Source of the DNA: Trichosphaerium sp. ATCC 40318
Taxonomy: Eukaryota; Protista; Tubulinea
Direction: 5' to 3'
Length of the DNA: 64,000 nucleotides
Assembly: GCA_038496445.1 (NCBI GenBank)
Contig: JALMLS010000381.1
Span: 2,432-66,431 of the forward strand
Shown here: positions 4,195-61,378 of the stretch, in pieces
How positions within the stretch are numbered: position 1 is the stretch's first letter
How the letters are laid out: every line of letters starts with the position of its first letter
The notes under the pieces: model-generated
Seen by the model: only the letters and a program-made list of their open reading frames with translations
Told to the model about the DNA's origin: nothing
Database searches by the model: none
Program-made: the position numbers and the translations under genes

Positions 4195-5504
4195 ATGAGC
4201 TTGGTATTATTCCAATTATATATAATTGTGACTGCATGGCTTGTTTCTGGTTCGTTTAGGAATACAGCAATGAAATTAACAACCAAACCGCAGACCACCA
4301 ATTATACGCCCAACCGGTGTTACCTCAATCTCGTGGCTGTAAGTGTCAATGTGAGGCGTGTAATGGATGTATGTTTGAAGATTCGACCGCTTGCCCGCGT
4401 CAAAATGGCGGTGGAGACAGTACGAACTTATTTCTGTAATAACACGTGTTTTGGTTAATGTTTTCCAAAAGTTGACCTTGGATCACTTGGCGTAGATTGT
4501 GTCGTTGTTGACGCAAGTGCTGGTACAATTGTAGGAACGGATGGTGCTGATTGTATAATGATTACTGGAAGCTCTACAATTATATCTGGTGAAGTTACAG
4601 GAGAAAGAGGAAACGACTGTATCATAGTACAAGATAAAGCAACTGTGATGAATTTACGTGGAAGTATGTCCAGTTTTGTAGCTATTTATAGCTGACACAT
4701 GCTTACCAATCTATCAGACCAAGATGATGACTGTATAAGAGTTATTGATTCAACAACTTCTAGGGTAATCGGTAGCAATGGAGTGGACGATATTATCTTC
4801 GAAGGAGTAAGAACAGATTCAACTGGCTCGTATGACTATGTACGCACATCACATTCTAACATTATCACAGGTTTGCGGACATAGAGGGTAGAGCAGGAGA
4901 CGATTGTATACGAGTCTTACCCTACAATGGAGTACCTTCGATTCTTAGAGACATACAGGGAGACACAGAAAATGATTGCATTGAAGTACAAAATAGCGTA
5001 ATGGAACGAATAAGAGGTAATAATAGAATCGGCTCTTGAATAATGACCAAAATTATAGCTGGCGATGGCGATGACATAATAGATGCAAGGTGTTCATCAA
5101 TATTCTCTGCTGAAGGTAGAGGTGGAGATGACGTAATTATCTTATCTTCAATAACAGTTCGCACGTGACAATTCCTCAATTAAATCTTATTTTGATCATA
5201 GCTGTGTCAGCATCAGAAGTTCGAATTGTACGCGGTGGTAATGATCGGGATTTGATTATAATAGAAGATGAGATTCAGAACTCAAGAGTTGATGGGCGTA
5301 TAGATGGAGGAAACGACGAAGATGTGTATGTAGACTATCTTTTAGTTAAACTAACACTATTTAAGGTGCTGTTTGGCAGATCAAATGGGTACTGAAATAA
5401 GAGACTGTGAGATTCCCACGACATGTGTATCACCTTGTCCAATGATGCGAACGCCTTCAATGTGCAATAGACGGCTTAGTACTTGTATTGCATTGACAAC
5501 CTAA
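4195..5504 (+). CDS. Secreted protein with Cys-rich ends and RTX/hemolysin-type Ca-binding-like GxGxD repeats
   Basis: Signal peptide MSLVLFQLYIIVTAWLVS, then CKCQCEACNGC. Repeats include GTDGADCI, GERGNDCII, GSNGVDDII, GDGDDIIDA, GRGGDDVII, GGNDRDLII and GGNDEDVC. About 9 short introns. Confidence 0.7.
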
Positions 5505-5698
5505 GTGCAAATACTAAAACAAAAAATACAGTTCATTCTCTATGGGCGAATGTAATCATATCACGCACAGTGTAGTGTGCACACTTGAATTTATATACAG
5601 TCTTTTTCCTTACTACAGGGATTAATATAATTATATCACTAACAGAGCAATGGTTGTTGCTTTAAGTAAGACAAATTCATATATTTTACGGTGAGATT

Positions 5699-5781
5699 TT
5701 GGTGGGTATAGGCATTCGGTTTTTGTATCGAATTCTATTTTTTCGAATTTTTTCTTTCGAAAAATTCGGAAAAAACGTGGG
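5699..5781 (+). repeat. 83-bp exact direct copy of 3790-3872
   Basis: Base-for-base identity from ttggtgggtataggcattcgg to aaaaaacgtggg, offset 1909 bp. Confidence 0.95.
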
Positions 5782-5857
5782 TCTGTCAAATCGCAGTTTT
5801 AATGTTTGACAGCTTTTGACCAACAACACCAAGCGCTAGAAGTTATATTCGGCGTGA

Positions 5858-7046
5858 ATGGAACAGTTACCGCCTGAAATATTGCTTTACATCGTCGAAT
5901 ACGTTAATAGTCCATCGTATTTAGCAAATACTATGCAAACATGCTCTTTGCTTGCGTCTGTTGCTAAATCATGTCCCTTATACAAAGTACAACATTATGA
6001 AGCCAATTTTCGGCTTGTTTATTTAGTTTAGTTTATGACTAGTGACCACAAGGTAACGAGAGTAGCAGGGAGTGGAGAAGGATACCAAGATGGTAATACT
6101 AATGCTTTGTTTAATTATCATCAACTCAATTATTTGTGGGTTAGGAGATGCTATTACAACTGCAAGGTTTGATTTCATATACGCTCTGGCATTTGATAAT
6201 AATGGTGACGTATGCCATAAATGTTTTAGGATTGAAGTATTAAGATTATCATCAACTAACTTGTTTCTATGTAAGCTCATTATATCTGATAGTGTGAATC
6301 AAGTGATACGAAAATTATGTATGAAGACAAATATAGTGAGTACATTTGAAGGCGTTCAGTATAAATTACGACATCCTGAGGGCATTGCAGTTGATGAATG
6401 GAATAATATTTTTATAGTAGATGGTGCATATGTACAATATTGGGTGAACTCAAACCTTAATTTACGTAATATTTTTAGCGGATAGTATACTTGGACAGTC
6501 AGTCTGGAGAGCTCAAGGAACTTGTAAAATATCCTGGCAAATGGATAAGAAGAATTGCGATTGCTCACGGGTATGTTCTATACACCTCAAGAAACAGTTA
6601 CTATGTAGAATCTACCAAACACCCTCGAATGACTCAATCCATATCAGTGAATACACTTGAATTTCCAAGAGCAAAAGACTATATTTGTTGCATCGCAGTT
6701 GATGATAATGAGAATATTTACTTCAGCTGCTACAAGTATATTTATAGAACAGACAACAACTTTGAAACAAAGATTATCTATGAGATGCCAGCTGAAGCAA
6801 GCGAGTTCTTTTCTTATGCAAAAGGTATGACGTGTAATCATAGAATGTATTTTGCTGATATCTTCTGCAGGGTGTTTATTTTTTGGTAGTACGGCTAACT
6901 TGTATTGTTTGTTTGTTGAATCAAAGGATTTGTTAAAGATTAAACTAGATGGAGTTTCCCATATTGATCACGTGACATATTACGGAGAATCGTTGTATTT
7001 TACTCACGCTGGAACTCGCATAAGCAAGATTGATATGAACATTTAA
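5858..7046 (+). CDS. F-box protein with NHL-type beta-propeller repeats
   Basis: MEQLPPEILLYIVEYV is F-box-like. NHL-like segments follow: RVAGSGEGYQDG, LAFDNNGDLIISDSVNQVIRKL, HPEGIAVDEWNNIFIVD. Confidence 0.75.
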
Positions 7047-7772
7047 AGGTCAATACACATTGCTTTCAATAACCTTGATGTCTTCCTTGCAACCCTCCCT
7101 CATGTTTGGTCCAGAGACTGGCTACAGCCAGATTATGTAGTTACTCCCACTTTTAAAACAAATTTTGACGTTGAAAATAGTTTGTTATGATTAACGCTTG
7201 AGTAAATTGTATTACATACTATAAATAACATATATAGAGTATATAAAAATTCATTAATAGTAGCGTACTCTACAATGACTCTAAAAAATAGTTTAATTTG
7301 TGTGACTTAGCTGGTTTTTTTTTTTCACAGGATTTTGTACCCAAATTTTCAATTAGAATTTTTAATGTCGGAATGTTACTCTAGAGCCATTTTACTACCC
7401 AATCAAGTTGTTTAGAGTGAAAATAAGGATTGATTGATTAGTGATTTTTAAGGTAAACATGGTCTTTTCATGAACGAAAATGGCAAAAACACAGAAAATA
7501 AGTAAATAATTTTTTTTGCCCTTACAACGTAACTTTATACTCTCACGCTCCACCACCTAGTTTAACAGCACCTTTTAAAGCCGATAAGCATGTGTGAAAT
7601 GCTTGCGTAATTTGGCTCTAGGTCAATTGTTTTAAATAAACCTAGACAGTTTTGGAAGGTATTTATTAGATAGCAACCATTGGTAGTGTTTGCGGGTTTT
7701 TTTTTTGCTCCTTGTGTAGATTGAAATAAATATTATTAAGGAGAACGAATAAATATTTCTATGTTGCTTCAG

Positions 7773-8694
7773 CTATTCTTCGGTCGTCATGGGTAGGTTA
7801 TCATATAACCAATCAAATTCTTGCATATATTGTTGTCCTACTTGTAAATGTACATTTTCTTCTGATAGAGCGGAGCAGTCCACAAAATCAAAATTCTGCT
7901 GCTGGAAATCACGATATTGACACTGTCCATCAATACCAAGCTCACGTTCGTCAAGACAGTTTGTCTCTTCTGTAGCGTGTGGGTATGTAGTGTCCATGGG
8001 GGTTGGTTCCAAACGATTCATCTGTGATGTTAAGGCGCTGTAGTCTTGGCCCATGTCATTGAGATTGAACGCCAGTTGAGTATTATAGGCTGTTTGTGTG
8101 GTATTAGTATCGAGCAATTGTTTATTTTCCTCCACTGACGTATCATTTGCGTTTATTGTAACTGTTTGAAATCCTAGAGAGTGATAAGAAGTCAAGATTT
8201 TCTAGAAATGCTGTAAAACATCTTTTTTTAAGTACCCTTCATTATATGTTGCCTAACTAAGCTGAACGCACAAGGATTAAAATGCGACGTCATATCAGGT
8301 ACTTCAGGATGGAATATAACGAACTGATATATGCATTGGCCACCGTGTAGCACTTTTTTGAACTTCATACGCTTACCCTAAAAACAGGTTTAAAAAAAAA
8401 AAAATTTGGAGAAAAGCGGCTCACTGATATTGTAGACCGTATACAGAACTTGTATAGGTTTCTGATCATAGTATTTTTAGTTGTGTACATCTGTTCGAGT
8501 GTTTTATAGCTTTCATCGCTAATGTAGACTATGTATCCCTTGGTATCGAAGTCTGTAAAATGAACCTATACCAGGGTGTTAAAAAATACGTTTTGAAAAG
8601 AATCACGTGCGCAACATTCTTTTGAAAGGTGCCTGTAAGGTAATACCATCCTTAAGAAGCGCACTAGTATAGTCTCTTTTTTGGTGGCGCTCAT
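7773..8694 (-). CDS. Divergent HSF-like winged-helix transcription factor, paralogue 1 (4 exons)
   Basis: Spliced N-terminus ...GYIVYISDESYKTLEQMYTTKNTMIRNLYKFCIRS...KFKKV...FVIFHPEVPDM, followed by an acidic/Q/T-rich tail. Same intron positions as paralogues 2 and 3. Confidence 0.55.
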
Positions 8695-10078: not shown

Positions 10079-11040
10079 TCAGTATTCGCTAGCAAGCACA
10101 CTATTTTGCATTTGCTGTTGGTTCAATAGCCATATTTTTCTTTCGCTTTTTAATAGCTCGTTTTCTTCTTGAACATCGCTAAACATAACCAATAAATCCA
10201 AGTACATTTGCTGCCAATCACACTCTTGTTGTCCAAGAGTGCTAGTTACAAAATGACATCGGTTGTTTGTACCATGGGTATAGGAAGAGTCGATTGCCAT
10301 TGGGTCTGGTGAGTTACCTTTGGAAGGATTGGAAGGTTGTTCAACGCACTGAATGTTGGGTTGATACTGATCTTTGACGACATACTCGCCTTTGTACTAA
10401 GGATTAGAAGATTCAAAAGTACAGCTTATTGGCACGTACCAGTAAAACAGTTGTAAAAGTATCCATTCTGGGGTGTTACAAGTTCCAGTATTGTATGTTC
10501 TTGTGGAAAAACATCACCGCATGCTTGTATATTTTTAAACCCTAAGAGTTGATAAGTCAAGCTTAGATTTGCCTTAAAATGTTAAGTACCGTTTATTTGC
10601 GCTTGTCTTACAAGTGACAGAGCACTTACTTCATAGTTTGAATTCATATCAGGAACTTTAGGATGAAACACAACCAGTTCACACAACTCCTCGCCGCTAC
10701 AAAGAACCCACTTGAAAACCACGCGCTGACCCTTTACAATGAATTAATGGTTTGTTTAAGGGTTCATTAGTAAACACGTGCCGGACAAGTGGACTTGATA
10801 CAATATTTGTACATGTTATTAGTTATTGCCTTGGGATTCGCATATTTATGGAAAATTTCATCGTAGGTCTGTTTATTGATGTAAATAATCCAGCCCTTTT
10901 GGGGTTTACCGTATTTAAACACAGCCTATGACTGTTAGCGTAGGAGAATAGAGGAACCATACAGCACATTGTTTAGCAAGGTGTCTATAACGCTTTGCTG
11001 CAGTTAAAATTATCTTGAAGAGAGTTTGTGTCCTACTCAT
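10079..11040 (-). CDS. Divergent HSF-like transcription factor, paralogue 2
   Basis: MSRTQTLFKIILTAAKRYRHLAKQCA|AVFKYGKPQKGWIIYINKQTYDEIFHKYANPKAITNNMYKYCIKSTCP|GQRVVFKWV...VVFHPKVPDM. The C-terminus has a coiled-coil-like stretch, YLDLLVMFSDVQEENELLKSE. Confidence 0.55.
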
Positions 11041-12649: not shown

Positions 12650-13270
12650 TTGTCACGATATGACAAATATTGAGATATTCCTTTTGGACGCCTTTCCTTG
12701 CCTGGATTATGTTTAGTATTAAGACAAGGAACCGACAGTACAAGACATTTAAGACTAGCAAGTCTCAAAAAAAAAAAAGAAAATCGACCACTTCAGCGTG
12801 TAAACACTAAAACATGCTTTTGAGCATTCTATGTACGTAAAACAGGCGTCAGTGTTCGTATTGTTTAAGTGTTGTAGTTGATAAAGGCCCAAACCGCTGC
12901 GAAGAGTGTTGCTGAAGGTATATAGACTTTCTAGATAATCTGCGCTAAAATATACTCATACAACACTCTTCAACACTAAAAACTTCCATCTAGATGAAAA
13001 ATCAGTGTAAACACGTGCCCTTGGAACGTTAAAACGTGCTAGAGCACAAATTAAAAAAAAACATCTAACACCCCTAAAAGTTATGCACGCCAAGAACCAA
13101 CGCCACGTAATCGATTGAGGTATGTTTGACGTACCCAAAATCAAAACTATCTTACTAACGGCCTTGTGTAGCTGTTATTGCTGTTGAAACTATGCTCAAA
13201 AATAAATAGCGATTCTGTTCTTGAAGGGCGTGGTTTCTTTTTGGCCGAGGACTTAAGTTAACTTCACAGC
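12650..13270 (+). repeat. Diverged ~600-bp segmental duplication, copy A (copy B ~15750-16310)
   Basis: Collinear shared blocks: attgagata...ccttgcctggatt, acactaaa...gcattcta, acacgtgccctt..aacgttaaaa and tatgttt.acgtacc.aaat.aaaact.tctt..ctaacg.ccttgtg.agctgttat. Confidence 0.75.
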
Positions 13271-14692: not shown

Positions 14693-15749
14693 AAACCTTT
14701 TCACTCAAATAAATGATGCTATTCATTTCACCAAGCCTTAGTTTTTAGCCAAGTTCCTAGAGTACGATCATGTTGATAATAAGTTGATTTACGTTCGATT
14801 TCATCGTTGTGAAATATGTGTGACTTTTTTGGTCCGATTTTTTATGTGTCACGTGACTAGAAAAAGTTGACAAAAAATTGCATGTTGAAACTATGAAAAC
14901 GCCTATGTCCTTGTTAGCTGAACGTCTTGACACAACAATATCAAACGCGTTAATATTGAAGAAATTTGATTGCAGATTGCACGTTAACATATTTCTGATA
15001 TTCCTGTAATTACTGCGTTGACATTGAATGATTTTTTTTTATTCCGGTTTCAATGAACAGCTGCAGATAGAAAAGTTTTTGCCACGTGCCAACATGAAGA
15101 AAGGCCAGACGCTCTTTAATATCTTTGTCATGCTTTGGAAGTTCTAAAAAATAACAAGAAAGTGATTTGTAATCAGGATACAAAACGGAAAACTTGCCCA
15201 CATGACCTTCTCTTGGTTCAGGAAGCCAATAAATATGAATTTATACCAAAATATGAGTGTACAGGCAGTCTCGAGTTCAGTTGAACCTAAAATGGACGCA
15301 TCTGTACGAGGGTGGTTCCACTTTGGAAGTAGGTAGGCAGTGTTGGTCAAAAACACGTGAAAAATACTTCAAAATGTAACGCACTAACTCCGTGTCCTTG
15401 TTTAACTGTTTAGAAAGCCACGTGTACCAACGGGTTTTTTGTAGGTTAAAGACCACCAGTTACCAAAAATAAGCAACTGTGCGGTAAATCTCACTACAAA
15501 CAGTCGTAACATAGCTAGCACAAGATACTGTGTGTAGAGTATTGTGCACATACTACTCCGTTTGCAGCGCACAAGTAGGAGAAAACTGCTTCGGTTAGTT
15601 TTATCAGATAGATAAAGCGGTGTAGCTCCTTTTAATGTTTCTTTATGTGTACGACTACTGAAGGTGAACTAGCGAAAATTCATAATGTTAGTTGGGTTTT
15701 TTTACCTCAACTTCATCTGATGAGCTTGCGTATAACATAACGTTCCAAG

Positions 15750-16310
15750 ATACAACTCCTAGATAGAAACATTGAGATAGTCTATATTTTTATGCCTTCC
15801 TTGCCTGGATTCATGTCAATACGAACTAACCACGAGCAACAAGGTAGTGTTTGGTCCAAACAAAACAAAAAATTATCAAAAAAAAAACGACATTGTAAAA
15901 CACTAAACGTACTTGTGGCATTCTACATACAGCGCCAACGCCATCGTTTGTTTTTGAAGCCTACAAACTGCGTTGTAGGCAAACAAGCTTGTATACTCTA
16001 AAAACTTTCGTTAGTGTAAAAAATGGAGTTACACGTGCCCTTAAAACGTTAAAAACGTGTCAGCAAACTAAACCAAAAAAAACGACATTATCACAACATT
16101 TTGTGTTCACCCAACGCTGAGCGAACACCGGTAAAGCATTAAACAGCTGATACGCTATGTTTAACGTACCGAAATAAAAACTGTCTTCTAACGACCTTGT
16201 GCAGCTGTTATAGCGCTTGAAACTTTGCACAAAAGCACTACACATTTATGCAGGGCTTCTGTTATGAAACAGGAGGTTGGCTGGGCTGTGTTTTTGGAGA
16301 CTTAACTTCA
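15750..16310 (+). repeat. Diverged segmental duplication, copy B
   Basis: Same collinear blocks as 12650-13270. Confidence 0.75.
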
Positions 16311-17341: not shown

Positions 17342-20270
17342 GCTTTGTTTGGTAAAAATAAAACACACTTAAGTGTGTTTAAGTCAAACACCAACGATAT
17401 TTTTCAAAAAACTTACCATTTCTGAGTGGTGAAAGCTGGTTTTGTAGTTATTTTGCAAGTGTTGTGAGTTATTATCGCCTGCTTTCAGGAAGTAAATCTA
17501 TAGATTGAAAAGTCAAAGTTAGGGTTCAAAACAACATCAAAAAGTTTTTCAATGATGGAATGTGACAAACACGTTCTAGTGGGTTAGTCAAAAAAACCCG
17601 GTACACACCGGAGTTTTAAAGAAATGTGAAGCTGGTTTTGTGTTGAATAAAGGGAGTGAAAAACATGGCGTCAAACAGCCTATTTGAGACTGAAAAGAGT
17701 TTGAAAAGGGGTTTTTTTTTCGGTTTCACAAAAAAAACGTTAACTGTTTTTCAAACCACACTTACCTGAGCACCGGATTGACTCATATTTGCTGCTTACT
17801 CCTTTCTGATGTGTACCTCTGCTGAAACATTTCGTAACAACTGCTTTTACTACAAAATTTTTCCGTTTGGCTCAGGCGAGGCACAGCAAGTCACATTACA
17901 TCTGGGTTAGTAAACAGAAGAAAAGATTGATACTGTGCTATATTTTTAGCTTAGCACCTATCAAAATATCAGATGCGACAATAACGATAACAGTACCTTT
18001 TGGAACATACCATAAATTACATTGCTAACAATAAGATTTACTGTTGGCGTTGTTCACTCCACAAATGTCAACCATTTTGGCCTTTACATACATATACATC
18101 ATTGAATGTTGTACCACACACATTCTGAGCTACTGCTCGATGAAAAGCGATAAAAAAAGCCAAAAACTTTTACCTATCCGTGTATCCTTTTGTCAATTGT
18201 TCATGAGCCTAATATGAATTTAGACAAACACCGAAACAGTTTAGAAAACAAAAAGCAAACAACAAAATAAACGAAAAAAAAAACCGCTCCAACAAGGAAT
18301 CTTCTTGGAAAGCATTTTGAAGCTCTAAGTTCCAGTTCATTTCTGAAACAAATAAAAAATCCTTCTACACCTCTTTTTGTACAATCAATGATCCCCTATG
18401 GAAGATAGTACTAAGGAGACCTTGTTTAGGGCCTTTTTAAAAGACACGTGCACCAACGGGTTTTTTTGTCGTTTCATTTGAAAAATCAATAAATAATTGC
18501 TGCAAACAGTTGTACAGTTACTAACACAAGGTTTACCTTGTAGTAACGCAGTTGGAAAAAGCCATGTTGAAGCCTGTCATTGTTTTAGTATGCAATTAAA
18601 AGGGACAGCTTTATACATATTCTTGAGGTGTAAACCTGTTTTTGAATTTGGTTATAAAGTGAGTAGAGATTATTGCTTGTTTGTGATAAAGATGGTATTC
18701 ATCCCGCTAGTAGGGCGGGTATGGCCAAATTACTTTCTGACAATACGGTTTTTTCTAGCGAAGAAAGAAAATAAAAAAGCTATGTTCTGCCACGGTAAAC
18801 TCAAAACATAGAAAGTTGTGAGCAAAGAAAAAGTGACATTACAATTTTGCAGTGGTAGCTTTTTGTGCACAACACGGGAAAAAATCACGAAGTATTTAAT
18901 AGTATTCTCCAAACAAAAGGATGTTTAGTAAGAATTTTCAGCCTACTGGCATCATACTTTTTTCTATGAACTTGGTGAAACAAGAATCGCAAACAATAGC
19001 TGGAGGTTACCAGTGTTTTCCTATCTTTTTGGTAATCTCGGTGGTAATTTACTCCGATGATAGGCTCTCGCAATGCACATTCCAGTTGGCTTTTTGTAAA
19101 ATGAAAACAAACGTACTATTTTGTACTCCAAACACATGGAAAGGTTTTTTTTAGAGGCGTAATCTACGTGATTACTAAACAGTTAAGAAAATCACGTTTG
19201 TCCTACTTGAAACAATTGCTCACGAAAACAAAGTTCTCCACCACGTAAAACGCCAAGTTGTAATACTATAGCCATGCACAGAGCGTAAAGCACTGGTCGT
19301 GTATTCTTACCGCAAAACTTTCTCAAACCCTCATCATACTTCAAATTGAAGAGCTCCAGTGGGTCCTAGATTACAAAACATAAAGTTAGCCTCCGCTGTA
19401 TTTGTTACTAACTTTGAATTAAAAAAAAGAACAAAAAAAGATTTGTGGTTTCGGAAACGTAGGGATCCATCACGTGATTAAAACGTGACAACTACGCCGC
19501 TAATACAAACGCATGGAAAAAGCTCACAGTTCTATATAATATGTTTTACTATGGCTTAAAAGAACCTAAACATGTAAAACAATTACCAGGAGGTTTTTAA
19601 TACAGTTTTGTATAACCAGGCTTTTAATGAGTTTTGACACATGGATTTTTTTTTGTGCCAAAACACAGAAGAATTTTCAAGCGAAAAAAAAGATCGAAAC
19701 GGCTTATACACACCAGTCTTGAGGATGTAGATGGCATGGTTTGTCATTTTTCCAAAAAAGCACGCACGTATCGTTGGTTGTGAACAAGCCACTTTTTTAC
19801 CATCGCTGATAGTACGAGCCATAATAATGAATATATATGTCGACGCAGCAGAATAAGAACATTCCGGCGGTTTTTTTTTGTGCGTGAAGAAAAACAAGCG
19901 TAGTAAATAAAAACTAATCTTCATACGCACTAATTTGTACTCAAAAATAGTTGGAAAGGGTTTTTAGAAGGTATAAAAAAACCGTTACAATTTTTTTCAA
20001 TACTAGCGTACTCTCACTCCAAAACCGCTCACGTTCGCGGTTATACGTTGATGTATACGTAACAATTACGGCTATACCAAAGCCTGCTGTTTGTAATATG
20101 GCGACGCACATAACGAATGTTGAGAAAGAAGATAGCGTCTGGCATATTTTTACACTTTAACCCTATCAAAAAAATTGTTACACGTGACAATAACATAACA
20201 GTACCTAGATAACAGCTGTATATCACCATCTCACCATAAATTAAAACTGGCACAATAGTAAGGGTATACT

Positions 20271-23200: not shown

Positions 23201-24661
23201 ACTACTTGAAACAAGTCCATTTGCAGTACTAGCAATAGTACCAGTCACCAGAGATTTAGCATAACTACAAAGTGAAACATTAGAACTTCAGTCAGATTCA
23301 AAGTGCTTTTGAGGAAAAAACGTACACTCCCCAAGGTACAATATGTAAAGGATTCGCTGTAGTTAGCCATACATGCCTGTATACACCACCACCTTCATAC
23401 CTAATTGGTAGAGTGAGATAATTCATCTACGAAGCTGACTGTTATCAACATTATATACAACGTACCACCATCCTTCATTGTGTGTTGAATCTACTTTAAT
23501 AGCAAGTACATTAGGACCATCATACCGTAAATAATCTTGGATGTAGTATCTGAAACTAGTGTATCCAGAAGGGTGATTTCCTAGTTCCCAAATAAACACA
23601 GTAAGCTTGAAATCTGTGTACAACAAAAAGAAAAAAACAGAAATTGTACCGAGAAGATGTCCGTTCAAATAAGCTGTACTATCACGGTATACGCCATCAA
23701 AATCCAACCAAATCGTTTGGCCTTCAGAGTCAGAAGGCGCATTAAATGTCTTTCTGTACCAAGCGATACCCTACGAGTTGCTGTTAAATCGATAAGTTGC
23801 TAGTGCCAATTAAGTCAAACGGAAAAGTTGAAGTAAAAAGTGGAATTGTGCTTTGGCTTGTTTCAATTTTTCCAGCTTTGTCTCCTGAAGAACTTCGTAG
23901 ATTGTACCTTTGGTAGGTATCCATGACTCCTGTCACCATTCTCGTTAAATGTTCCCTCTATTACAAAATCATGTGGTACGTTCAAAGACCTCCAAGATGA
24001 ATCATTAAAATCATCCATACAATACGGATCACCACATGTTTGATTATTCAATGGAGGTTTTACAGTTCTCCCTTTTGAAACCCATCCCTTACCCGGTTTA
24101 CAATCCGCCGTACTACCTACCCAGCAAGTCCCAGCAGGCGTACATTCAGTAGATCCAGGTGGACACCTACGAAACAGTTTAGTACCACGTGACCTAATAA
24201 CTCACAACAAATATGTACCACTGCCACGTGCCGCATTCTACATCTGCGCAACAGGCGTATCGACACTCATCTACATTTTTCGCTGCGTTGTATTGAGAAA
24301 GGCCAAAACACTGCGTATCGTTCATGTCGATCGGAAATGTACTCGAAGGGCATACAACAGTCTTTTTCAACAGATAAAACTTCCATCTGCGACAAAATAA
24401 TATTAGCACGTGATTTTAAGCGTTAAAAACGTGTTGGAGTGCGATTAACGAACTGAAAGAATCAGTGATAAACCGTTAGAAAAGTTTTGCGTTCACCAAA
24501 GATCAACCCAAAGCGAATCCAAATAAATAGACCAACAGTGCTCCAGAGTGGTATTAACATACCCAAAGTCAAAACTAGATCGCTGGCGACCTGATACAGC
24601 TTTTGCTGAGCTTGAAGCTATAATCAACGCTACCAAGCAGCAATACTGTAATGCGTAGCAT
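20271..24661 (-). CDS. Secreted glycoside hydrolase family 2 (beta-galactosidase-like) with an inserted ricin-B domain
   Basis: RQRSSFDFGWKF, WRSLNVPHDF, FDGVYR, HPSGYTSF, WWYEGGGVYRHV, NHQDFAGVG, RMSHNPP, WSLCNE, WTGFDYKGEPTP and GVGNGDPSCHEPD. Ricin-like GGCMDLWD/NQKW at ~20960-21300. About 20 introns. Apparent 1-nt frameshift in the signal peptide. Confidence 0.92.
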
Positions 24662-24889
24662 GTTTATGGAAAGATCAACACTTAAACTCAATGTACCTTT
24701 GACTTAACGGTTACGTTACACATAAAGCAGCCCGTGCTAGATAAATTATGTCTCCAGAGACCTACGTGATTGTGCTTGAGTTTCCAAAGTGTGTATTCTT
24801 GTGGTTGTCTAAGGTGGTCGAGTCGGTGTGTTGCTTACACCCAAAAACAGTTTTAAAATTATGTTTTATTATTACTTATTTCTTTTACA

Positions 24890-27800
24890 CTAAATTGGTG
24901 AATGCATACCAAGCCTTGTATCAAAATCAAGCTTAAGTATACGTTGTTTTCTTGTATATAGTGATGCATACATCTTCTTACATATCTGATCAATTATAAC
25001 AATGATAGGCACCCAAGCGAATATTACTACATACGTATACCATTTGATTTTATCAAATAACTCATTGTTCTGTGTTGTAGATACAGCAAAGAAACCGACT
25101 TGCAATACCACACTAAAAATAGAATATGAGCAAAATATTCACGTGTTGATGATTTATAAAAATGAGTTTGAACGCAGGAAGATCAAGACGAATACTAACG
25201 TTTTTTTGTTTCTTCGCGTTTTAAAGCTGGCTGGTTTCTGATTCTTGATCACGTGCCTGATTGATACACATGCCACCCATGGTAAGTTAAGAAGCGGATT
25301 GTACTGAAAAATTGTTCTTGATGGGTGTTGGAAACTCAAGGAGCTCACCGCTACAAGCTTGTTAAATATACACCAAAATTGAAACAACAAGGTTGTTATG
25401 CATACCAGTGAACAAAACAAAGCTAAAAAGCGCAATGTTTTGTGAAAAATCTTGAGCAGAGTAAAATAATGCATCAGGGAAAGTGTTTGGTAGTTTGGCA
25501 CCAAATATAGCCTCAACTGGACCTCCCCAAGTTTGTGAAATTGACCTGTACAAAAAGTTAATTACTTCAAATCAACAACACTCCACAGAAAAACATCTCG
25601 TACAATGCGAATATAAGGACTAGCACTGATATAGTTGGTATAACGCGTATTGAAAACCACTTAAGGTACGTCTTGAAATCATTCTTAAACCGCGTGTTAT
25701 TCTTCGCTGTATAACAGACATTAACAAAGAAAAGGAAGAAAGAATGATGTACCCGAAATAAGCTCGATAATCTTGGATTCTGCACGTGACGATAGTAGTG
25801 GAATTGTTATCAAAGGTATTATTACAAAAATTAACCATAATATCTGTAGTCCAGATAGCGGTTGTGGTAATAGAATAACGTTGCTTACAAGCAAGAAAAA
25901 ATGGAGTGATAACAAAACTGATAAGAAAAAAAGCACAGCCTATAATTTACAGCGGTAAGTGACTTATCAACTTATTAACAAGAATTGACGTACCTGTTTA
26001 GTATTGCGTGATACACGTCTACCTTCCCATAACAGATTCAATAACCGTTCGAACTTTGGCTGTCCGAAAACAAGATCACAAGCAAGGCAATTCAAGTCAA
26101 CACCAAAATTGGATGTTGTACCTTGTGCTTTAAAATGCCTTGAAGAAATCTCGCCAGTCTTATAAAACAAAAAAGTTAGTAAATGGTTGGCACGTTTCTT
26201 TTTCGTTCTTTGACGTACAAAATATTGTGTTCTTGGTGTCATTCCAATAGCTAGATGCGCTTGACTGAAAGATGGTACATTTTTGTGCGTAAGGGAGCTT
26301 CCAGCAACCATTACAACCTCTCCATTTTCACGCAAGATTTTTATCTACAACGTTTGAGTTTAGGATACTAATTTGGTACAATACGTACCATCTCCGAAGC
26401 CGATGATGCATCTACGTCACAAAATAACTTTACCAAGAGCGGTACATTATCAACATTTTTAATGTGATCACGAATAGACGAGATACCAACTGGTAATTTT
26501 TCTGCAAACAAAATGGTCAGGGTCAGAGCCAACTACAATCCTTCATGTGGACGTACGTATTTCTGATTCTGTTTCTGGTTTCTTAGACTTTGGTGGATCT
26601 CTCAAAGTTACACAACAATTCCAGTCCTATTAAAACGAAGTTTAAAAAAAAAGGCAAAAAATTAAAGTTGATTCGTACTGTTTCTATTCCAAGTTTTTCA
26701 CCAAAACTCTTGATAACGGATTCTGAGTTTGGAGAGAAATACATGAATCGTATACTTGCTGAATTTAGAGCGTGCTAGATGGTGTTAAAAGGTGAACAAA
26801 AAACTTAATTTTATTTACCAAGGCAGCTACAGCTGTTGCTTTTGGAAGTAACCGTAGGGCTGCCATACCTAAAATAATATTAAAAATAGCTCAGTATTAG
26901 ATATAAGTACCAATGAAAATTTGTTTGTGTGTCAAGGACTCGAATTCTTCAGCAACAGAACCATCTAAATGAAGATTAGTATTTTAAAATGCAGTACAAC
27001 TAAATACCTTGTTCTACTTCACTTTCATCCAAATCCTCTGTATCACTATCTTCTGTAGTCCCTTGATGAACTACTTTGGAATATTTCTTATCTATAGATT
27101 TAAAGCTTTGAATGAGTTAAAGAAAGGTCGTTTTGTAATCCAATGAAAAAAACAAAAGACGTGGATACGAGAATCCCAACAACTTGTAATCAGTAAGGTT
27201 CCAGTCGCTCACTACCTTTTTTAGAGTTTTCCTATCTGATTTACGAAGCTTTTTAATACTCTTGCCATCCCAAAACTCTAATCAAGTTATGACTAAGTGT
27301 GCTTGAATGTACTTACCAGAGCAAGACTTTAGAATATCAAGCGGAGGACCAACAGCCAACAATTGCATGTTGCCACTGTTTTTATCTTTAACAACTAAGC
27401 TTACACCATCATTGTGAGGTATCCATCTCGGTTAAACTGTAAGTAATTGACCATAGCAAGAGAATAGCAATACCGTATTGGTACAAAGTTATATTTTATA
27501 TCTGATTTAAATCCAATTACTGTTGCTAGATCATCTAAAGCTCCATGGTAATGCTTGACACCAAGAAGCGTTGTAAGCTCGCCATAATACCCTGTTAGAA
27601 TGCAATTCAAGCCAAGAGGCTTAAGTGCTCTTAAGGTCGTTAGTCGAACAGAAAACGATTTTATCAGTCGGCATACGGAATAAGAGCTTGCCATTCTTGC
27701 ATTTTAAACGACAGAACGCCATCATCAGCCTCTAAACTGAGTAGCTTCGGTGTTCGTTTTTCATCCATAACACAAATAGACTCAACAAAAGGTCTTGCCT

Positions 27801-46370: not shown

Positions 46371-47942
46371 ATGTTGGAAATGGTGGAGATGGTTCTTCAC
46401 CACAACCCATTATCTGATGATCAGAAATTTCTTATACTATGGGTAATGTCAGTAACTTCCACTGTGTCTATGATAGGTGCTGCATGGATGGCATGCTGTA
46501 TAATACGATACGGTACTAATAAACCTTGTTTTCATTTAACATGACGCTTTACGCTTCAAAATCGTTTCAAATCACGTGAAAACGATCAACAGTCTTTTTT
46601 TGAACGAATTGTCATTAAAAAACTTATAGGTCGATTGAGCATGTTATCGAACCGTTTATTGCTTTATTTGGCACTGAATGATATTATGTTCAACGTTAGC
46701 GATTTATTAATGCTCGTGACAAATTACACTACAAATGAAGGTGAGTTTTCTTTGGATTTATATAAACCGTTTTTCCTCTCTTTATGACATTGTACAAAGG
46801 GATATGTATAGCTCATGGCGTGTTTTATTCGTTTGCTCAGATGACGATACCGTTATTGACGTTTGTCATTGCTTTTAATCTTTTTTCTGTTGTTGTTATG
46901 AAGAGGTATGCGTAACACTCCAACGTTCTTGTTTTCTTTTTGTGTACCAACAACAGTTGAAGGGAAAATATGGCACGACGAGAAAAGTATTATTTGTTAT
47001 TTGTATATGGACTATCAGCATTCTTAGCGTTACTGCCTTTAACTACACAGGGTTATGGAAAGGCAAACTCTCAGTATAGGTATGTTTTACACCGACATCT
47101 TCACTTTTTTTTTCAGTCACACCTGACTACCTCTTAAGGTGTTGGATACGTATATCACAAAATCAAACAGATAAAGAGATAAGTATAGCCCACATGTACG
47201 TTAACTATTGCACAAAACAAGACGTGAAATGAACAGAGGTTTTAACACTTGAAACAGGTGGCGTTCTATTAGTGTTTTTATCATACCTCTTCTTTGTATG
47301 TTTGGTATCATATTCTGCTACACGTGTATTTATCTTCGCGTAAAGAAACTGACAAGACTAGCTGTACGTCCGATTAAAATGCCGTTCAACATAACGAACT
47401 GAGATCTATTTTTAGAATGCTTCCAACAGAGAAGAAACTTCTCTTCAAACGCATATTCGTAAGGAACAAAGGAAGAGACAAGGATCTCTCTTAAAGAGAC
47501 TTTTTTGGTATCCAGTAATATTTGTTTGTTTGTGGATAACTCCTATAATACGTCGACTGTACAACTTTAATAACGGTCACGAGGTAAGGAGTTTAGTTTT
47601 AAAAGTATGGAGACAATAAATTATTTTTAGGTAATCGCACTCATTGTTCTTCAATACGGAACGTACACACTTACTGGGTTACTTAACGCTATAGTATGGG
47701 GTATTCTAAACCCCGAGCTTGTGATTTGCGTAAAGAAGATCCCAGGCACGTGTACTAAGTTTATAACTCAAAAAAAAACGAAGACAATATTTTTCTCTAA
47801 GTTATCTAAAACAATTAATGTAGCTTCTGAGCCTTCATACGATAGTTCTACTATCTCAAACTTTTCAAAAGAATCGATGGATACAAATAATTCAATAACA
47901 CAGACCGATAAACCAAACTATCAATCTCTGGATGTTGCATGA
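46371..47942 (+). CDS. 7-TM G-protein-coupled receptor of the cAMP-receptor-like (CAR/Crl) type
   Basis: Spliced translation: TSTVSMIGAAWM, NRLLLYLALNDI, ICIAHG, REKYYLLFVYG, LPLTTQGYG...CWI, RLFWYPVIFVCLW and LTGLLNAIVWG. Confidence 0.85.
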
Positions 47943-52399: not shown

Positions 52400-55300
52400 T
52401 TATTCTCGTGATATCCTATTTGCTGATACCTCCTTTCGCGAACCTTTTCAAAACAATGTCTATACTGCTTCACCGCAAAGATGTGAAGAGGTACAACAGA
52501 ACTGATGAACCTGAAATTATACAGGAGGTTTTTAAATATGAAAGAAGCACGTGACAAACTATGTGACCCCAACACATATCTAAATAACACCTGGTTAGAG
52601 TATTACGCCATAGAGTATTACTTTCCTTGAGAACATCCAAGTCAAGAATTAAAGGCTCATCTACTCTATACGCCACACTCAGATCGAATGTCTGACCTCC
52701 TAGCAACTCTTTAGCACTTCTGTTTTTACCAACAATGAGCCATTTACATACATTTGTTAGGAATCTTTGTGACATTCATCTCTAGACATAAAGCAATTGC
52801 AGGTACAGGTTCTGCTTAAAGTATAATTAGCAACGTATAATACATGATGTGAACTGTACCAGCTGTAGGGGTTGAAGGCGCAGTTGGAGCTTTTGGAGCA
52901 GTAGGAGTACTTGGTGGTGCATCTGTTGTTGGAGTATGCGTTGGGGCATTTGTTGTAGGAGGAGGCATAGGTGGTACTACACGTTGCATACTACAAGGAT
53001 TGTCACTTTCAAAAGCGTTCGTGCCTGCTTGTAAAGTGAAAGAAGGTGCAGGTAGCCATGGCTCCTAGTTGTAAGTTTGTTAGAACAGGACCTATTTTTA
53101 AGTGTAGTACTTGTGAAGATAATTTGTTGTACAGGTACACAATGCCAATGTTGTTGTTAGCGTAGGATACACTCTGAACAGTAATATGTTGTGATACTTC
53201 TAGTGTCAATACATGCTTCATTACACCATCTCTCAATACTGTTGTAGCATTAGCTACAGGTATATGACTAATGTTGAGTTAATGTGGCTTTGTTCTTTGT
53301 TGCTGGAAAAATGAGATAGAAATTGTAAAAGACAACACGCACACCATGTTGTTACTATCAACAACTTCAAACCTTATAAAAACAATCAGGTAAACAACTG
53401 AAAATAATAGAATTATGTACCCAGCACACTGAGATGTAAGAGGACTAGTCCACTCAGGACATACAGCTGACGTATTCAAGTACAATCCATCAGCTACTGT
53501 ATCATCATAAAAGAACACTGTGACAACAGTAGGTGCAGATACCGGCATGGCCTAAAGGGAAAAGAATAGGTTTGAAGTTCATTGTTTCAAGTAGGCAGTA
53601 CAGGTGTTGTTTCAAAGTAGTGCGCTACAGGTCCATATGCATTTTCTGAAGTGTTATATATCATTCGAGATATCACACGTTCCATACGTTCACCTACTTG
53701 TAACTTGTAACGAGGGTGAATAGCACCGCCCGGGCTGAAAAGATCATAAAGATCAAGACCACTTGCAAACCTTATCATAAAGTAAGTTCATTTTAGTGTC
53801 TTCATTTACTTACCCAACATCATCCAATTCACATGCTTCACGTTGTGCTATTCGCATAGAAGATATGGATAATTCTGGTTCCACTGGGTATGGTACTAGG
53901 TTCATGAAGACGAAAGGGAATGAAGCTCCAGTTGCTGAACCTGCATCCCATTTTAGACGCCACTCCTTTATCATTTCTTTGACCAAGCACCCATACTGAA
54001 CAGCAAATCCAGTAATAACATTCGTTTCTCCTTGGTACCATAAAGCACCAGTGATGGTCATCTACAACAGAATGTAAGATATTCTTCAAAGTTCAACTAT
54101 TCATACCTTTGTAAGCGGAAACATCATAGCGCCCCAATTTCGAGTTTTGCTTCCATCAGCCTCAGTGTGGGGACATTTACTTAGTACTGAGGCACTTGAC
54201 CATGACTACAGTAAGTTAGCATTGAATGAGAATAGGCCTTGAAGAATAAAGTGTTCACGTGCCTCAATTGAAGACCCGCCAAATGCACTTGTTATCAAAC
54301 CAACAGGTATGCCTGTACGTCTATGTAAAGCTCTTCCAAAGTACCAACAAACACCACTGAATCCTAGATCGTCAAATCTATCAACAGAGTCTGGTGACGA
54401 AGGAACCCAGCCTTGCCAAATGGTATTGAATTCTTGGAGTTCCTTAGCAATCAATGTCAGTTTTAGCACCTCTTTTTGTTTACTTACAATGTTGCTTCCA
54501 GTAAGTCTACCAACGGTAAATAACCTTATTCATGGGATCCCTGCTTGTGGACGTAGAGCCATAAAGTCACTTGTTCGGAGAATAACCACTCCATGTTACT
54601 GGAAAGTATACAAATTAGTTACACCCGAGAATGCTTTTTTTTTTTACCTTTGTCCACTACAAACGAACACATCTCCAAACGTTACATCCTTTGTATAACT
54701 ATTTAATACTCTCTTACGAAAATATACAAGTACTACTTACTGTAATTTCATCCTCAACAGCCAGAGTATCATTGATGCCAGGTAATGAGAAGATTACTTT
54801 TGCACGTATTCTAAATGTTGTAAACAATTACATGTCAAATAAAAAAAACCGCTTGACACGCACGTGTGGGTACCACCAGCAGGTTGAGGAGGCAGTCTAA
54901 CATTCCACCCACCCTGAAAGAGTTATGTAAATGTTATATTTATGTGTAGTTATTACCAGTTCATCTGCGGTAGTAGTGTATTCAACGAGTCCAAAAGTCA
55001 CAATTACCTATGTTTACAAATTTAAAAAATGTACTCAACACCTCTTCAAATACATACTTCATCCTGAAACAGCTTTACCCCATATATTTGCTTGCTTGGG
55101 TGCTCTATGAAGTACCTTATGACTTCCCATAGCGTTCGAAAACAGATCCTTGCAAGTAGAGTTAACTCGAAGCTTCAAACAACACATACGCAGCCTTTGC
55201 AACTGTAGGCGTGAGTCACAGCAGTTGTACATTCTCCAGGGGTTGTAGAGCAAATTTGGTACAATGGTTTAGCTGGACCACAGTAATCTGCACCAGACTC

Positions 55301-55636: not shown

Positions 55637-55919
55637 AGCTCTTGGTTGTTTTTTATAATTAGTAAGAGCAGCAGATTTGGAAAATGTTGCCTTAACCGAA
55701 ATCTTTGGCAAGTGGCTAGAAGTTGGTCGTCCGCTACAAAAATCTGTAGACAGAAAGGCAAGGTGGGAATTAAGTAGTAGACGGCTCGACCCAGTACGAC
55801 TTATTCGCTAAATCTAGATTGATCGCGTCTATTCCAGCAAAACCTATACGTTGCCGTATTTTAGCTCTTCGCAAGCAAAGTAATCGCTTGTATAAGTTCT
55901 TGGTCACAATTTCACGCCT

Positions 55920-56494: not shown

Positions 56495-57024
56495 ACTCAT
56501 TCTCATGCCACATCTACAATAGATTGCATTATTTACAGGCAGGCATAGAAGAGGAAAGCTAGTTGCTGGTAATTTCTGTTTGTTCGTTGAACTAGCATAT
56601 CAAACTATCACTTGTTGCCCAGTGCTGTTCAATGGTAATTACCATACTTACACGTGCTTTTGAAAAATGTAAATTGCAGCAGTTTTATCCAACAAGCAAA
56701 TGCTACGTATTTGTACTTTATTTTTTCTTTTTAATATATTTTCATTTTTGCGAATGCTATTGTAGAGCAGGTGTATTGTCGTGCATTGCTCTCTTTAGCT
56801 ATGTACGGTGGAGCAGGCTCTATATATCTTGTCTGATACAAATCATGGCTTATGTGATCTTTGCGAATATCTACAAAAAGAAACAAAGTTGAGACATCAA
56901 GTAGTGATGAACAGATATTTCAACCTTTACTTTACATAAACATGTAACAGAATTTTCAGTAGCCAATTACAACCAATAATACATGTTCAATTAAATTTTG
57001 ATTACTTCCTGATGAGTTCATCTC

Positions 57025-58454
57025 TTATTTCCCTATTCTTTGCTTAAGCATTCGGTTTAAAGATCCATCTTCATTCCATTCCTTGTACAGACCTTTCTCT
57101 AAACCATTGATAAACTCACATTCAACATGTTGCTGTCCATTTCTATGCCATTGTTTAAAAACACCATCCTTTTTACCATCATTAAATGTACAATGAATAT
57201 GGAGTTGTCCATTATCATAATACTGTTTGAAATCCCCGTTCCTTTCATCATCAGTGTAAATACACTCCAACTCAATCACACCATTCTCATGCCATTGCTT
57301 ACTCTCACCTAATTTTTTACCATTTACATACATACACTGCATAGTAAGTTGTCCATTCTCATACCACTGCTTAAACATACCATTTTCCTTACCATCAACA
57401 TACGTACTTTGTATTTGTAGTTGTCCATCCTCGTACCACTCTTTATACTCGCCATTCTCTTTACCATCAACAAACATACTCTGTATAATAATATTACCAT
57501 TTTCATACCATTCTCTATGCATACCATTTTCTTTACCACCAGAAAAAGTACACTGGATATTAAGTTGTCCATTGTCATACCATTCTTTGTACTCACCATC
57601 TATTTCACCACCAACATAAGTACACTCTATTCCTAGTGTACCATTATCATGCCATTGCTTGAAATGTCCATTTTCTTTGTTGTTAACATAAACAATTTGG
57701 ATACTAAGTTGTCCATTCTTATGCCATTCTTTGAATAATCCTTCTTTTTTATCATCAACAAACATCCACTTGCATTTAAGTTGTCCACTCTTAAACCACT
57801 TGAAATACTCTCCTTGTTTTTTACCATTAACAAACATACATTGACCAAGCAACTGTCCACATTCATAATACTGCTTGAACTCACCATGCTTCTTACCATC
57901 AACAAAAGTAAACTCAGTCCTCAGTTGACCACCCAAATACCAACTTCTATAATCACTATTTTCTTTACCATTTACATAAGTAAAGTTTCTCTTTAGTTGC
58001 CCATTCTTGAACCACTGTTTAAACTCACCATTTTATCATTAACATACATATACTCTGTCTCAAGCTGTCCGTCCTCACACCATTGTTTGAATTCACCATT
58101 TTTTCTCCCATTGGCATACATACACTGTATATTAATCTGTCCATTCTTATACCACGTCTTGTAATACCCATTCAACTTTCCATTGATAACATTGAATTGT
58201 TGCTCTATTTTTCCGTCTGGGAACCATTTTAACCAAATACCATTGGGTACAAGCTCATTATTGTAGTGAGTATTGATTGCAGCTCTTTTTGATAGCACGT
58301 GATACTTATTAAACACTTCTGCATTGAAAGTACGTAAATATACTTGAATATCACTTGGTAGGTCTAATATACTGCTACAAGTAGTATCTTGTACAAGACA
58401 TAGACCTCTCTTTGGCAGCACGTCAATTTCTGAGTTATCTAAGGTAACCATCAA
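57025..58454 (-). CDS. Intronless MORN-variant (YwqK-like) repeat protein with F-box-like N-terminus; frameshift at ~58032
   Basis: 24-aa repeats of YVNGKENGEYKEWYENGQLxIQC. ILDLPSDIQVYL near the N-terminus. The repeat continues across the two ORFs after a shift in a short A run. Confidence 0.8.
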
Positions 58455-59291
58455 TAAATTAGATTACAACATGAAAACAAACTAATCAACAAACGTTTCT
58501 AGCGCTATATTGGAGTTTTAGAGCATTAAAAAATACTCTCATTGCATGTAACAAGCTAGGTATACTACATATGCTCATCTCCGATGAGAACGGAAATGTA
58601 TAGCTGTGAAAAATATGATGCAAGGGTTTTTTCAAAAAGTGATTGGTTTCACACTTGTACAACATTGATGTGGTTTTTGTGTTAGGCCGTAAAAGGAGAT
58701 GATTTTTATAAGGCGAGGATGTCTTATCTAGGGTTGCTGGGAGATATGTAACGAAGATTTTGTACCGCTCACATAAAGGAAAAAAAAAAATCACGTGGAC
58801 TTACTAATTACGCGACTCGTTATATTTATCTCTTTTTACGGTCTAACAGTTGCGCTTATAAATAGACGGTTCATATTCATTTTGTTGTGGGTTTTCGTTA
58901 AAACTGAAGTAAAGTAATAGTGTGGTATTTGCGCGTATTAAATAGCGGTAACGATGTTTTTGCATTAAACGGAGTAAAAAACAATTGGTTATATGAGAAG
59001 CTCTTTTCTGCGATGTATTTAGTCTTTTGCGTACGTGAACTCATCTTTGTCGACTGAATTGCGTCTGATGGACTAATAAAGCCTATGTTGGTTAGTTTTA
59101 TAGTATTTTAAACAAATAATAAACTAGAGCATACCGCAGCTATACTGCCTTGTTTGTGCGAACTTCAATCTATTAACTAGAGGACACTACCTCCCCAATT
59201 TAGTTCAGGAGCTAAATGATTGTACTCTTGCGGAACAAATAAAAGTCAACGCAGGTAACTTCGTTAGTGTCAAAAAAATACAGTTAAAACG

Positions 59292-61378
59292 ATGATTCAC
59301 ACTTTCAGTTTAAAACGTGTTTCCTATGACGGCACTCTTGAACTTAGGTAAGAAGCAGATGAACCCATTTTAACCGTTTTTTTTTTAATGGTTACGTTGT
59401 TTTTGATGCCATCCCTTGTTCCGCGCGTTTATTGTCTTTAGCGAAGGAAAACACGTGATTGGGAGAAATAAACTTGGAGTCACATCCAAAACAGTATCGA
59501 GGAAAGTATTCGCGCTTATAGTTACTCCCTCAGACGTGACAATCTATGTTGAGGTACGTTCACAACAATAACGTACTTTTCTCCCTTGTTCTTTCTTTAC
59601 CTTGGATAAAGTAGAGCACAAGTGGTGATTGCGAATTAGTCTGTGTTTATTTTTTTTTTGTTGTTGTTGAGTGTTTTTTATCTACTGTGTAGCCTGAATC
59701 CAAAAACGATATGTTTATTCGTGGAGTAAAACTAGAGAAAGGAACCCAAGTGCGTGACTCCATCCATTAAAAACAAACATTATTAAAGTACTAACTTTTG
59801 TTTCGATAGCTCGTTGCTCCTTTAGATGAGTATATTCAAGTTGATTCCAAAGGATGCGGTACAACTTATGTAATCTCTATAGTATCTTCTGAGGCAGTTA
59901 AACCGCCTGAGCCGCCACCACCTGTGCCTCAACTGAAGTACTTGCGCCAACAAAAAAGTTTATAGTAAACTCTCTAACGAAGCGTTCTTAGACTTGTTGT
60001 GGCATCTGATTATACTGACATACCTGAACTACCAGCTCCTCAAAAGTACATTGATCTCATTGATACTTTACACTCTAAAAACAACGCAGAATTTTCGTAC
60101 AAAAAGAAAGAGCAGTAGAGTCAGAGGAAGACATTTTTGTTGATTCTCAAAAAGAAACTGACGCAGAAAACCAACCTGACTCGTACGTATACACGTCATA
60201 CAAAAACCTCCTCACTCCGGGTTTTCCAGGCAAGCTGAAACTCAAATTCATTCCCAAAACTTTCTTGATATAGACGAATTGCTTGGTATAACCAATGAAC
60301 ACCAACAAGTTGAAATAAAACAAGAACTTGAGGCAGTCACTAAAAATGTGGAAACGCCATCTAAAAAAAGAAAAAAACGCTATGCACGTGCTTCTTATAC
60401 AATGATATTTTTTTGAATGACGTGATTGCTTCCTTAGATTGAATACGAAGACCTTGAAAGCGACAATGACCTATCATACATGAACTATACTCCGAACCGT
60501 ACAAAGCCACAAGGGCATCCAAATGATGAACCAATAGATGTTGATGATTTTGAGCCCCAAAGGAAAAGAGATCCACCGAAAAAAACGGGTTCTATTCGGA
60601 AAACAAAGGCTACTGGGAAGAAAGTTAAACCGTCCTTCATTCCATATCAGTGCGCCAAGAAATCAGGTTACAGTCCAAAAAAAGGGTCGTTCAAGCGGGC
60701 ACTAGCAAGAGGAGGAATGACTGTCGTGGATTCAAACGAAAGTCCTTCATTGTCAGAAAGCTTTGACGGTGATAGCGCTGATTCATTTGTACCCATACAA
60801 CAACAAAACACACCAATTTCTCTATCCAACTCTGGTGCGGTTAAAAAAGATGTGGAAAAAAAAAGTCATTATGAAAGTACTAACCTACAACAACTAGAAA
60901 GTGAAGAGGAAGAAGACAAAGAATTTGATTTCGAAGATAATGAGATTTCTCAAAACAGCATTGGCAAGGTATATAAGCCCAAAGAACTTGAAAACGAGGA
61001 ATCTCTTAGAGATATATTAAGGGTAAACAAAACAAACAAAAGAAAGAAAAAACCAAGAAAAACCCTTTCCACGCACCACTGCAATTATCTATCGCTATTC
61101 TACAACTTACCTCTTCATATCTTATATTATTTTAGCATTACCATGAATTCATGAGCGAATCAAATTCTTCCTCAAATGAATCAAATGATGGAGATTTCGT
61201 TTTAGATTTCGAAGAAGATGATATCATTTTTCCTCCACGCAAAAAGTTTAGAGAGTGCAAGAACGAAGCAGTGAAAAAAGGATTCAGCCCACAAAAGAGA
61301 TTAGCGTATGTTATTCGCGAGAAAAGAAGGAAAAGCCAAAATACTAAACTTACCAACAACTGCCGAAGAGAGCACTAA
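59292..61378 (+). CDS. FHA-domain protein (PNKP/APTX/APLF-type FHA) with long acidic/basic disordered tail (3' end approximate)
   Basis: Spliced N-terminus LELSEGKHVIGRNKLGVTSKTVSRKVFALIV...SKNDMFIRGVKLEKG shows the GR, SR and N FHA motifs. Confidence 0.65.

Follow-up and report, generated by a model that had tools for sequence, protein, structure and literature searches.

The 64-kb window analysed here, the whole stretch of 64,000 nucleotides (nt) of contig JALMLS010000381.1 from the amoeba Trichosphaerium sp. ATCC 40318, harbours seven accepted introns that start with GC instead of GT and share the donor heptamer GCACGTG. They are probably ordinary U2-type GC-AG introns which were created by a genome-wide, DNA-level pressure for the palindrome CACGTG and not by a special small nuclear RNA (snRNA). 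A preliminary description of the same DNA had listed eight such sites, one of them with reservation, and all eight do carry GCACGTG on the strand given for them. The window has a G+C content of 36% and short introns are densely packed in it.

Two of the introns are resolved by RNA. Contigs of public runs X1, X2 and X3, which represent three studies, were aligned to positions 22000-27999 only, where two of the claimed introns lie in one large minus-strand gene. A 3,076-nt contig is 100% identical to this region and lacks more than 12 short introns, and the contigs therefore derive from processed RNA. The intron at 25113..25256 (minus strand, 144 nt, donor GCACGTGAT preceded by cag) belongs to a large multi-exon membrane-protein gene; the joint 25112/25257 skips its 144 nt in contigs of X1, X2 and X3, and only GC..AG, on the minus strand, gives canonical-like ends. 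The intron at 27799..27842 (minus strand, 44 nt, donor GCACGTGAT preceded by aag) follows the residues DKKGILTK in the same gene and is skipped by the joint 27795/27840 in X2 and X3. The boundary of this joint is ambiguous by 5 nt, but none of its six readings starts with GT, and GC..AG is obtained only as 27799-27842. Both introns begin with GC, end with AG and are absent from spliced RNA, as the definition of U2-type GC-AG introns demands. Junctions at nearby GT donors had been named in advance as the observation that would speak against GC donors, and both RNA-testable introns turn out to be GC..AG instead. Fifteen more joints within the same region are GT..AG introns of 42-60 nt, so that the RNA-verified introns of the window range from 42 to 144 nt. 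Run X2 is listed as a different organism; its contigs are 90-99% identical to the region and splice out 25113-25256 and 27799-27842 as well, which implies that a close relative has these intron positions, the donor DNA itself not being visible in contigs. Searches of Pfam, PDB and Atlas for the proposed TMEM94 identity of the gene with DKKGILTK gave no match.

The other five introns, with donors at 5161, 8610, 10781, 54262 and 60384, restore long open frames. Scored with a matrix that was trained on GT donors and disregards positions +1, +2 and +7, their donors reach 3.3-8.3 bits. Use of a GT alternative at these sites would either lose coding sequence with poor scores or, in one case, leave an intron of 24 nt. 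Removal of 5161..5201 (plus strand, donor GCACGTGAC preceded by ttc), which spans 41 nt, or 50 nt via an in-frame acceptor 9 nt downstream, joins 40 and 63 open codons; the GT alternatives score below 0 bits and the intron is also called by a gene finder. The intron at 8566..8610 (minus strand, 45 nt, donor GCACGTGAT preceded by tgc) is supported by frame and donor score. Its in-frame GT alternative at 8566-8589, raised in the preliminary description, is at 24 nt shorter than any verified intron. The 50-nt intron at 10732..10781 (minus strand, donor GCACGTGTT preceded by ccg) joins 48 and 49 open codons and has a donor of 7.3 bits, compared to at most 1.5 for the GT alternatives; frame and score are joined here by a finder call at relaxed penalty. 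Frame, score and finder likewise support 54206..54262 (minus strand, 57 nt, donor GCACGTGAA preceded by gag) in a sialate O-acetylesterase-like gene, which has a weak match to Pfam SASA. The exon upstream of it aligns to residues 144-211 of the sialic acid acetylesterase 8f9q, and the alignment ends at the last residue of the exon, with GGSSIE facing GGTPIE (motif GG(S/T)xIE), just where the esterase motif had been placed before. The intron at 60384..60437 (plus strand, 54 nt, donor GCACGTGCT preceded by tat, with the 8-nt palindrome GCACGTGC) is supported by frame and score, since its removal joins 68 and 238 open codons and the best GT alternative scores -2.5 bits. The earlier claim that GC donors restore reading frames thus holds for seven introns, two by RNA and five by frame, length and score. 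At the eighth site, 47746..47823 (plus strand), more than one reading fits. This stretch has the tandem donor GCACGT-GTACTA, with the GT donor at +6 in the same frame, its length is a multiple of three and it contains no in-frame stop; it may be coding sequence, or an intron of 78 nt with GC-AG ends or of 72 nt with the GT donor.

The intron census of the window was made with a self-trained Viterbi gene finder, which at tuned settings recovers 16 of the 17 RNA-verified introns; its first, stricter settings gave 51 introns and 12 of the 17. Scoring of intron candidates by codon usage discriminated too weakly. In a control the finder was permitted nine non-GT donor dinucleotides at equal penalty, and it returned 128 GT donors, 7 GC donors and 6 donors for the remaining eight dinucleotides combined. 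The share of GC-AG introns is about 5% (seven accepted among about 135). Apart from their donors these introns are unremarkable, with lengths of 41-57 nt and one of 144 nt, and with ordinary acceptor scores (mean 2.3 versus 3.3, standard deviation 2.7). The mean pairwise local alignment score is 8.2 for GC introns and 8.0 for random GT introns, with a maximum of 11; the GC introns are therefore no more alike than GT introns drawn at random and do not form a transposon-like family. An introner or other transposon-derived intron family was rejected, as there is no copy similarity along the GC introns, and so was a U12-type origin (donor [A/G]TATCCTT, branch site TCCTTAAC), as the GC donors read GCACGTG[A/T/C] and ATCC occurs in none of them.

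The GT donors of the window provide the context in which the GC donors are to be read. The 128 predicted GT donors have the consensus (A/C)AG in the exon and GTACGT in the intron, with A in 91% at +3, C in 59% at +4, G in 62% at +5 and T in 54% at +6, and the 15 RNA-verified ones mostly read GTAC(G)(T). The description of GT donors as variable is correct insofar as exact GTACGT is found in 27 of the 128, but they are not featureless. As GTACGT is the local consensus, GCACGT is a perfect local donor with C at +2, and for this species it is wrong to assume that GCACGTG strays from a strong U1-type match: ACGT at +3 to +6 is present in all seven GC donors compared to 27 of 128 GT donors (21%; chance about 2e-5). 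The GCACGT donors fit the well-known compensation pattern of GC donors. The G at +7 behaves differently. It is present in seven of seven GC donors, compared to two of the 27 GTACGT donors (Fisher p=6.7e-6), and is the least used base at this position in GT donors (16 of 128, 12.5%). The two predicted GTACGTG donors, the only ones in the window, lie at 29759..29765 (plus strand) and 10433-10439 (minus strand). None of 18 GCACGT[A/C/T] sites was called as a donor by the finder, which is blind to +7. The C at +4 of GTACGT pairs with neither the canonical U1 5' end nor the ACAGAGA box of U6, and judged from the donor sequences this would suggest co-evolved snRNAs or another recognition factor. At donors with ACGTG the ratio of GC to GT is 7:2, compared to a C:T ratio of about 6:1 at other NACGTG sites; these are nine donors and the uncertainty is wide, but this crude gauge suggests that the cost of a GC donor is small beside the pressure for CACGTG.

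No other hexamer of the window is as over-represented as CACGTG, which has 63 sites where 7.4 are expected (8.5-fold). Predicted exons carry 0.69 sites per kb, introns 1.46 and the remaining sequence 1.15, compared to an expected 0.12, and the sites are spread almost evenly along gene bodies at about one per kb. The flanks show no longer conservation (information at most 0.15 bit) except for a weak palindromic extension, A-T/A-CACGTG-T/A-T, and a comparison of strands inside genes revealed no asymmetry of the flanks beyond the donor G. The palindrome thus shows many-fold excess in coding and non-coding DNA and is part of no longer repeat unit, as in HIP-like elements. The heptamer GCACGTG occurs 27 times on both strands where 3.8 are expected, a number reached in none of 100 dinucleotide-preserving shuffles. 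The base preceding CACGTG is G in 27 of 126 strand-sites (21%), which is near base composition, and GCACGTG is therefore not more enriched than ACACGTG or TCACGTG. The preference for C over T before ACGTG is the same whatever base stands in front: the counts are AC40:AT8, TC48:TT7, CC11:CT2 and GC27:GT5, or 5-7 to 1 throughout. In addition, 63 of 300 ACGT cores (21%) are completed to CACGTG in the window as a whole, and about 21% of the cores in donors are, namely 7 of 34 (27 GT and 7 GC). As the two rates are equal, the status of splice donor gives no visible protection against CACGTG. Every one-mismatch neighbour of CACGTG is out-competed, by 5- to 18-fold.

It is proposed that a DNA-level force keeps CACGTG about 8-fold over-represented genome-wide. 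A donor reading GTACGTG would be one T-to-C step away from CACGTG, and this change may be favoured about as much as it is at any other TACGTG, with GC in a perfect donor costing splicing so little that it would fail to block the change. CACGTG would then be retained and donors with G at +7 would accumulate in the GC state. The T at +2 would be lost only where the rest of the donor is perfect, and ACGT would stand at +3 to +6 of every GC donor because the loss is tolerated in perfect sites alone; the invariant G at +7 would be a mark of CACGTG and not a requirement of splicing. We infer that the change ran from GT to GC. The force could be the binding of a symmetric protein or a methylation-linked repair as has been proposed for cyanobacterial HIP1. 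By analogy with the latter, a sequence-specific drive towards CACGTG in a eukaryotic nucleus, for example CACGTG-directed methylation with word-biased mismatch repair that overrides even the near-invariant T at +2, may be put forward as a tentative possibility. If such a drive exists, the GC:GT ratio at donors set against the C:T ratio elsewhere would measure how strong it is relative to what a GC donor costs in splicing. The overwriting of GTACGT donors by CACGTG had already been offered in the preliminary description as one of two explanations, and it fits every test run, namely the consensus, the 8.5-fold excess, the equal C:T ratios and the equal completion rate.

The other explanation offered there was a distinct class of donor read by a variant U1 or U6. 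Extended to recognition of GCACGUG at the RNA level by such an snRNA or by a CACGUG-binding protein, with the G at +7 needed for GC splicing, it has found no support in this window, and we consider it improbable. It would account for the single heptamer common to all GC donors, and the mismatch of the consensus C at +4 with canonical U1 and U6 hints at altered snRNAs. However, a G at +7 that splicing needs is hard to square with its rarity in GT donors, CACGTG is equally enriched where there is no splicing, the C:T ratio is the same in all 5' contexts, and an Rfam scan of the window detected no snRNA gene and no other family. Furthermore, an exonic, sense-strand GCACGTG at 24225..24231 (minus strand) goes unused despite a donor score of 7.1 bits: an X2 contig reads through it and splices at a weak GTACAT at 24218, 13 nt downstream of 24231, to remove the intron 24167-24218. 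Another GCACGTG, at 30478, lies inside the GT-AG intron 30459..30506 (plus strand, donor GTACGTC) of a cobT-like gene, which is placed by sequence and frames and has a Pfam DBI_PRT match on the exon upstream. These two sites, one skipped and one intronic, show that GCACGTG alone does not make a donor.

That the palindrome in the donors is a working E-box or G-box, bound by basic helix-loop-helix (bHLH) or basic leucine zipper (bZIP) proteins and selected gene by gene as an intron-borne enhancer or for the coupling of transcription to splicing, with the GC donor as the price, seems unlikely. Short islands bearing CACGTG are conserved between the diverged 3-kb tandem units described below, and the weak palindromic extension of the flanks is what such a site might show, but the near-even spread over gene bodies and exons, at about one per kb and with no concentration in promoters, and the 5- to 18-fold disadvantage of one-mismatch neighbours point to a genome-wide cause. 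It is very improbable that the GC introns lacking RNA support are errors of annotation, be it that splicing takes place at a GT donor close by or that there is no intron in the first place. In favour of such errors, a GT alternative of 24 nt lies in frame within 8566-8610, at 47746 a tandem GT follows at +6 and the intron is free of stops, two GC calls of the finder (1996 and 52547) are false, and the GCACGTG sites at 21872, 24231 and 30478 proved not to be donors. Yet both introns that can be tested by RNA are GC-AG, the other five have no GT option which combines a positive score with normal length, and GC calls are several-fold above those for each control dinucleotide.

Several points nevertheless weigh against a DNA-level origin of ordinary GC-AG introns. 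RNA proof is available for just two of the seven introns, the census depends on a crude gene finder which erred at 1996 and 52547 and whose call at 42517 is doubtful, and all evidence comes from one 64-kb window. With no snRNA gene in the window, an RNA-level role of the G at +7 in GC donors is possible. Finally, the one-mismatch neighbours of CACGTG are not depleted (TACGTG occurs 22 times where 25 are expected), so that a simple T-to-C repair route lacks specific support; the neighbour counts fit selection or retention of the exact palindrome better than a single mutational route.

Few signals of eukaryotic genes are as conserved as the GT with which introns begin, and in about 5% of the introns here it appears to have been rewritten, always in the same way, by a force that has nothing to do with splicing. 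Should a DNA-level pressure for CACGTG prove to be the cause, GC donors in otherwise perfect sites would carry almost no cost, the excess of GC-AG introns would have a concrete, non-compositional cause, and splice donors would serve as a sensitive readout of whatever maintains CACGTG. In practical terms, gene finders for this organism must allow GCACGTG donors, as otherwise roughly one gene in five is broken.

Among the remaining sites and calls, a donor at the GCACGTG of 21872 was rejected because an in-frame GTATTT 15 nt downstream gives an intron of the modal 55 nt, and one at 56657 because a perfect GTAAGT is present in tandem. If the finder's GC call at 1996 (minus strand) is read through, the glycine loop of a kinase (GTFGVV) emerges, with a GTACGA donor after it, and the call at 52547 (plus strand) is antisense to a minus-strand gene; the doubtful call at 42517 (plus strand) is a GCAAGT donor with an intron of 198 nt. 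Right after the GTFGVV of what is a cyclin-dependent kinase (CDK)-like gene lies a probable 34-nt GT-AG intron (1945-1978, minus strand, GTACGA...AAAG), which is smaller than the shortest RNA-verified intron (42 nt) and has the miscalled GC donor 18 nt upstream. Tandem in-frame donors of the form GCACGT-GTA, 6 nt apart, are found at 47746-47757 (plus strand, GCACGTGTACTA) and 56646-56657 (minus strand, GCACGTGTAAGT). In these the last G of the palindrome begins a GT donor, and the arrangement could allow alternative use of 5' splice sites.

Two diverged tandem units, separated by about 3.02 kb, have retained short conserved islands at CACGTG. Each contains a candidate GC-AG intron on the minus strand: 12976..13018, probably in a 5' leader, and its paralogue 15998..16038. 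GCACGTG and the terminal AAGTTTTTAG are conserved between the two, in contrast to the diverged flanks. The island around them, at 12976-13050 and 15998-16070, reads CACGTTTTTAACGTT..AAGG-GCACGTG...AAGTTTTTAG. A further island, at 15409-15440 and 18435-18466, has the sequence AAAAAACCCGTTGGT[A/G]CACGTG, in which CACGTG occupies +4 to +9 of what reads as a GT donor. A tblastn comparison between the units gave no match at the protein level.

The distribution of CACGTG has further features. No site is present in the 10.1 kb of 30480-40589 (roughly p=0.003 for the largest gap), where G+C is unchanged; this interval spans the end of the cobT-like gene, one or more large multi-domain genes at 31.3-37.7 kb, an intronless leucine-rich repeat (LRR) gene and part of a Rho-like gene. 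Of the 62 gaps between nearest sites, 16 fall at 586-748 nt, a cluster with a scan-corrected p of 0.0065 that may come from preferred spacing or from the way the genes are built, and the distances between all pairs have bumps near 0.6-0.9, 1.5-1.7, 2.3-2.7 and 3.3-3.5 kb. When the copies in predicted introns are binned from the 3' end, seven of eight begin 24-36 nt before the acceptor, roughly at the distance expected of a branch site, as exemplified by CACGTGGTACTAAAC in the intron 24167-24218. Other genes of the window include a MORN-repeat protein (57025-57936, minus strand, E=1e-44), the cobT-type phosphoribosyltransferase (30006-30470, plus strand, DBI_PRT E=4e-36) and, at 20861-21154 (minus strand), a probable glycoside hydrolase represented by its DUF4982 / ricin-B lectin part. 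A protein search with the intronless LRR reading frame 38445-39647 found distant LRR proteins only.

Our literature search found no report of GC-AG introns linked to CACGTG, of GTACGT donors in amoebae or of an excess of CACGTG in protists. Introner elements are transposon-derived intron families of Micromonas and Aureococcus. Like these, the GC introns have an unusual boundary feature common to many introns, but unlike them they share only the first 7 nt. In animals, fungi and plants 98-99% of introns are GT-AG (PMC7072748), and GC-AG introns average 1.3% over 61 species (PMC3033335). The introns described here resemble U2-type GC-AG introns of animals, plants and fungi in that they start with GC and end with AG, have ordinary lengths and acceptors and are stricter in the remainder of the donor. 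They differ in their share, which is about 5% compared to that average, and in the invariant G at +7, which lies outside the donor consensus and completes a genome-wide palindrome. Higher shares are known from Aureococcus anophagefferens (39.6%), Micromonas pusilla (22.2%) and Chlorella (7.7%), which all have at least 65% G+C (Iwata and Gotoh 2011, PMC3033335), and this algal excess has been linked to base composition while still being termed an enigma (PMC3033335). Like these algae, Trichosphaerium has a share far above 1% with an unexplained cause; unlike them, it has 36% G+C in the window and its excess is tied to a single hexamer. The closest parallel to the palindrome itself is the cyanobacterial HIP1 (GCGATCGC), for which a link to orphan methyltransferases has been proposed (Elhai 2015, PMC4390886). 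Both are short palindromes in many-fold excess, inside and outside coding DNA alike, and lack longer conserved flanks, but HIP1 is bacterial, whereas CACGTG is found here in a eukaryotic nucleus, where it collides with a splice signal.

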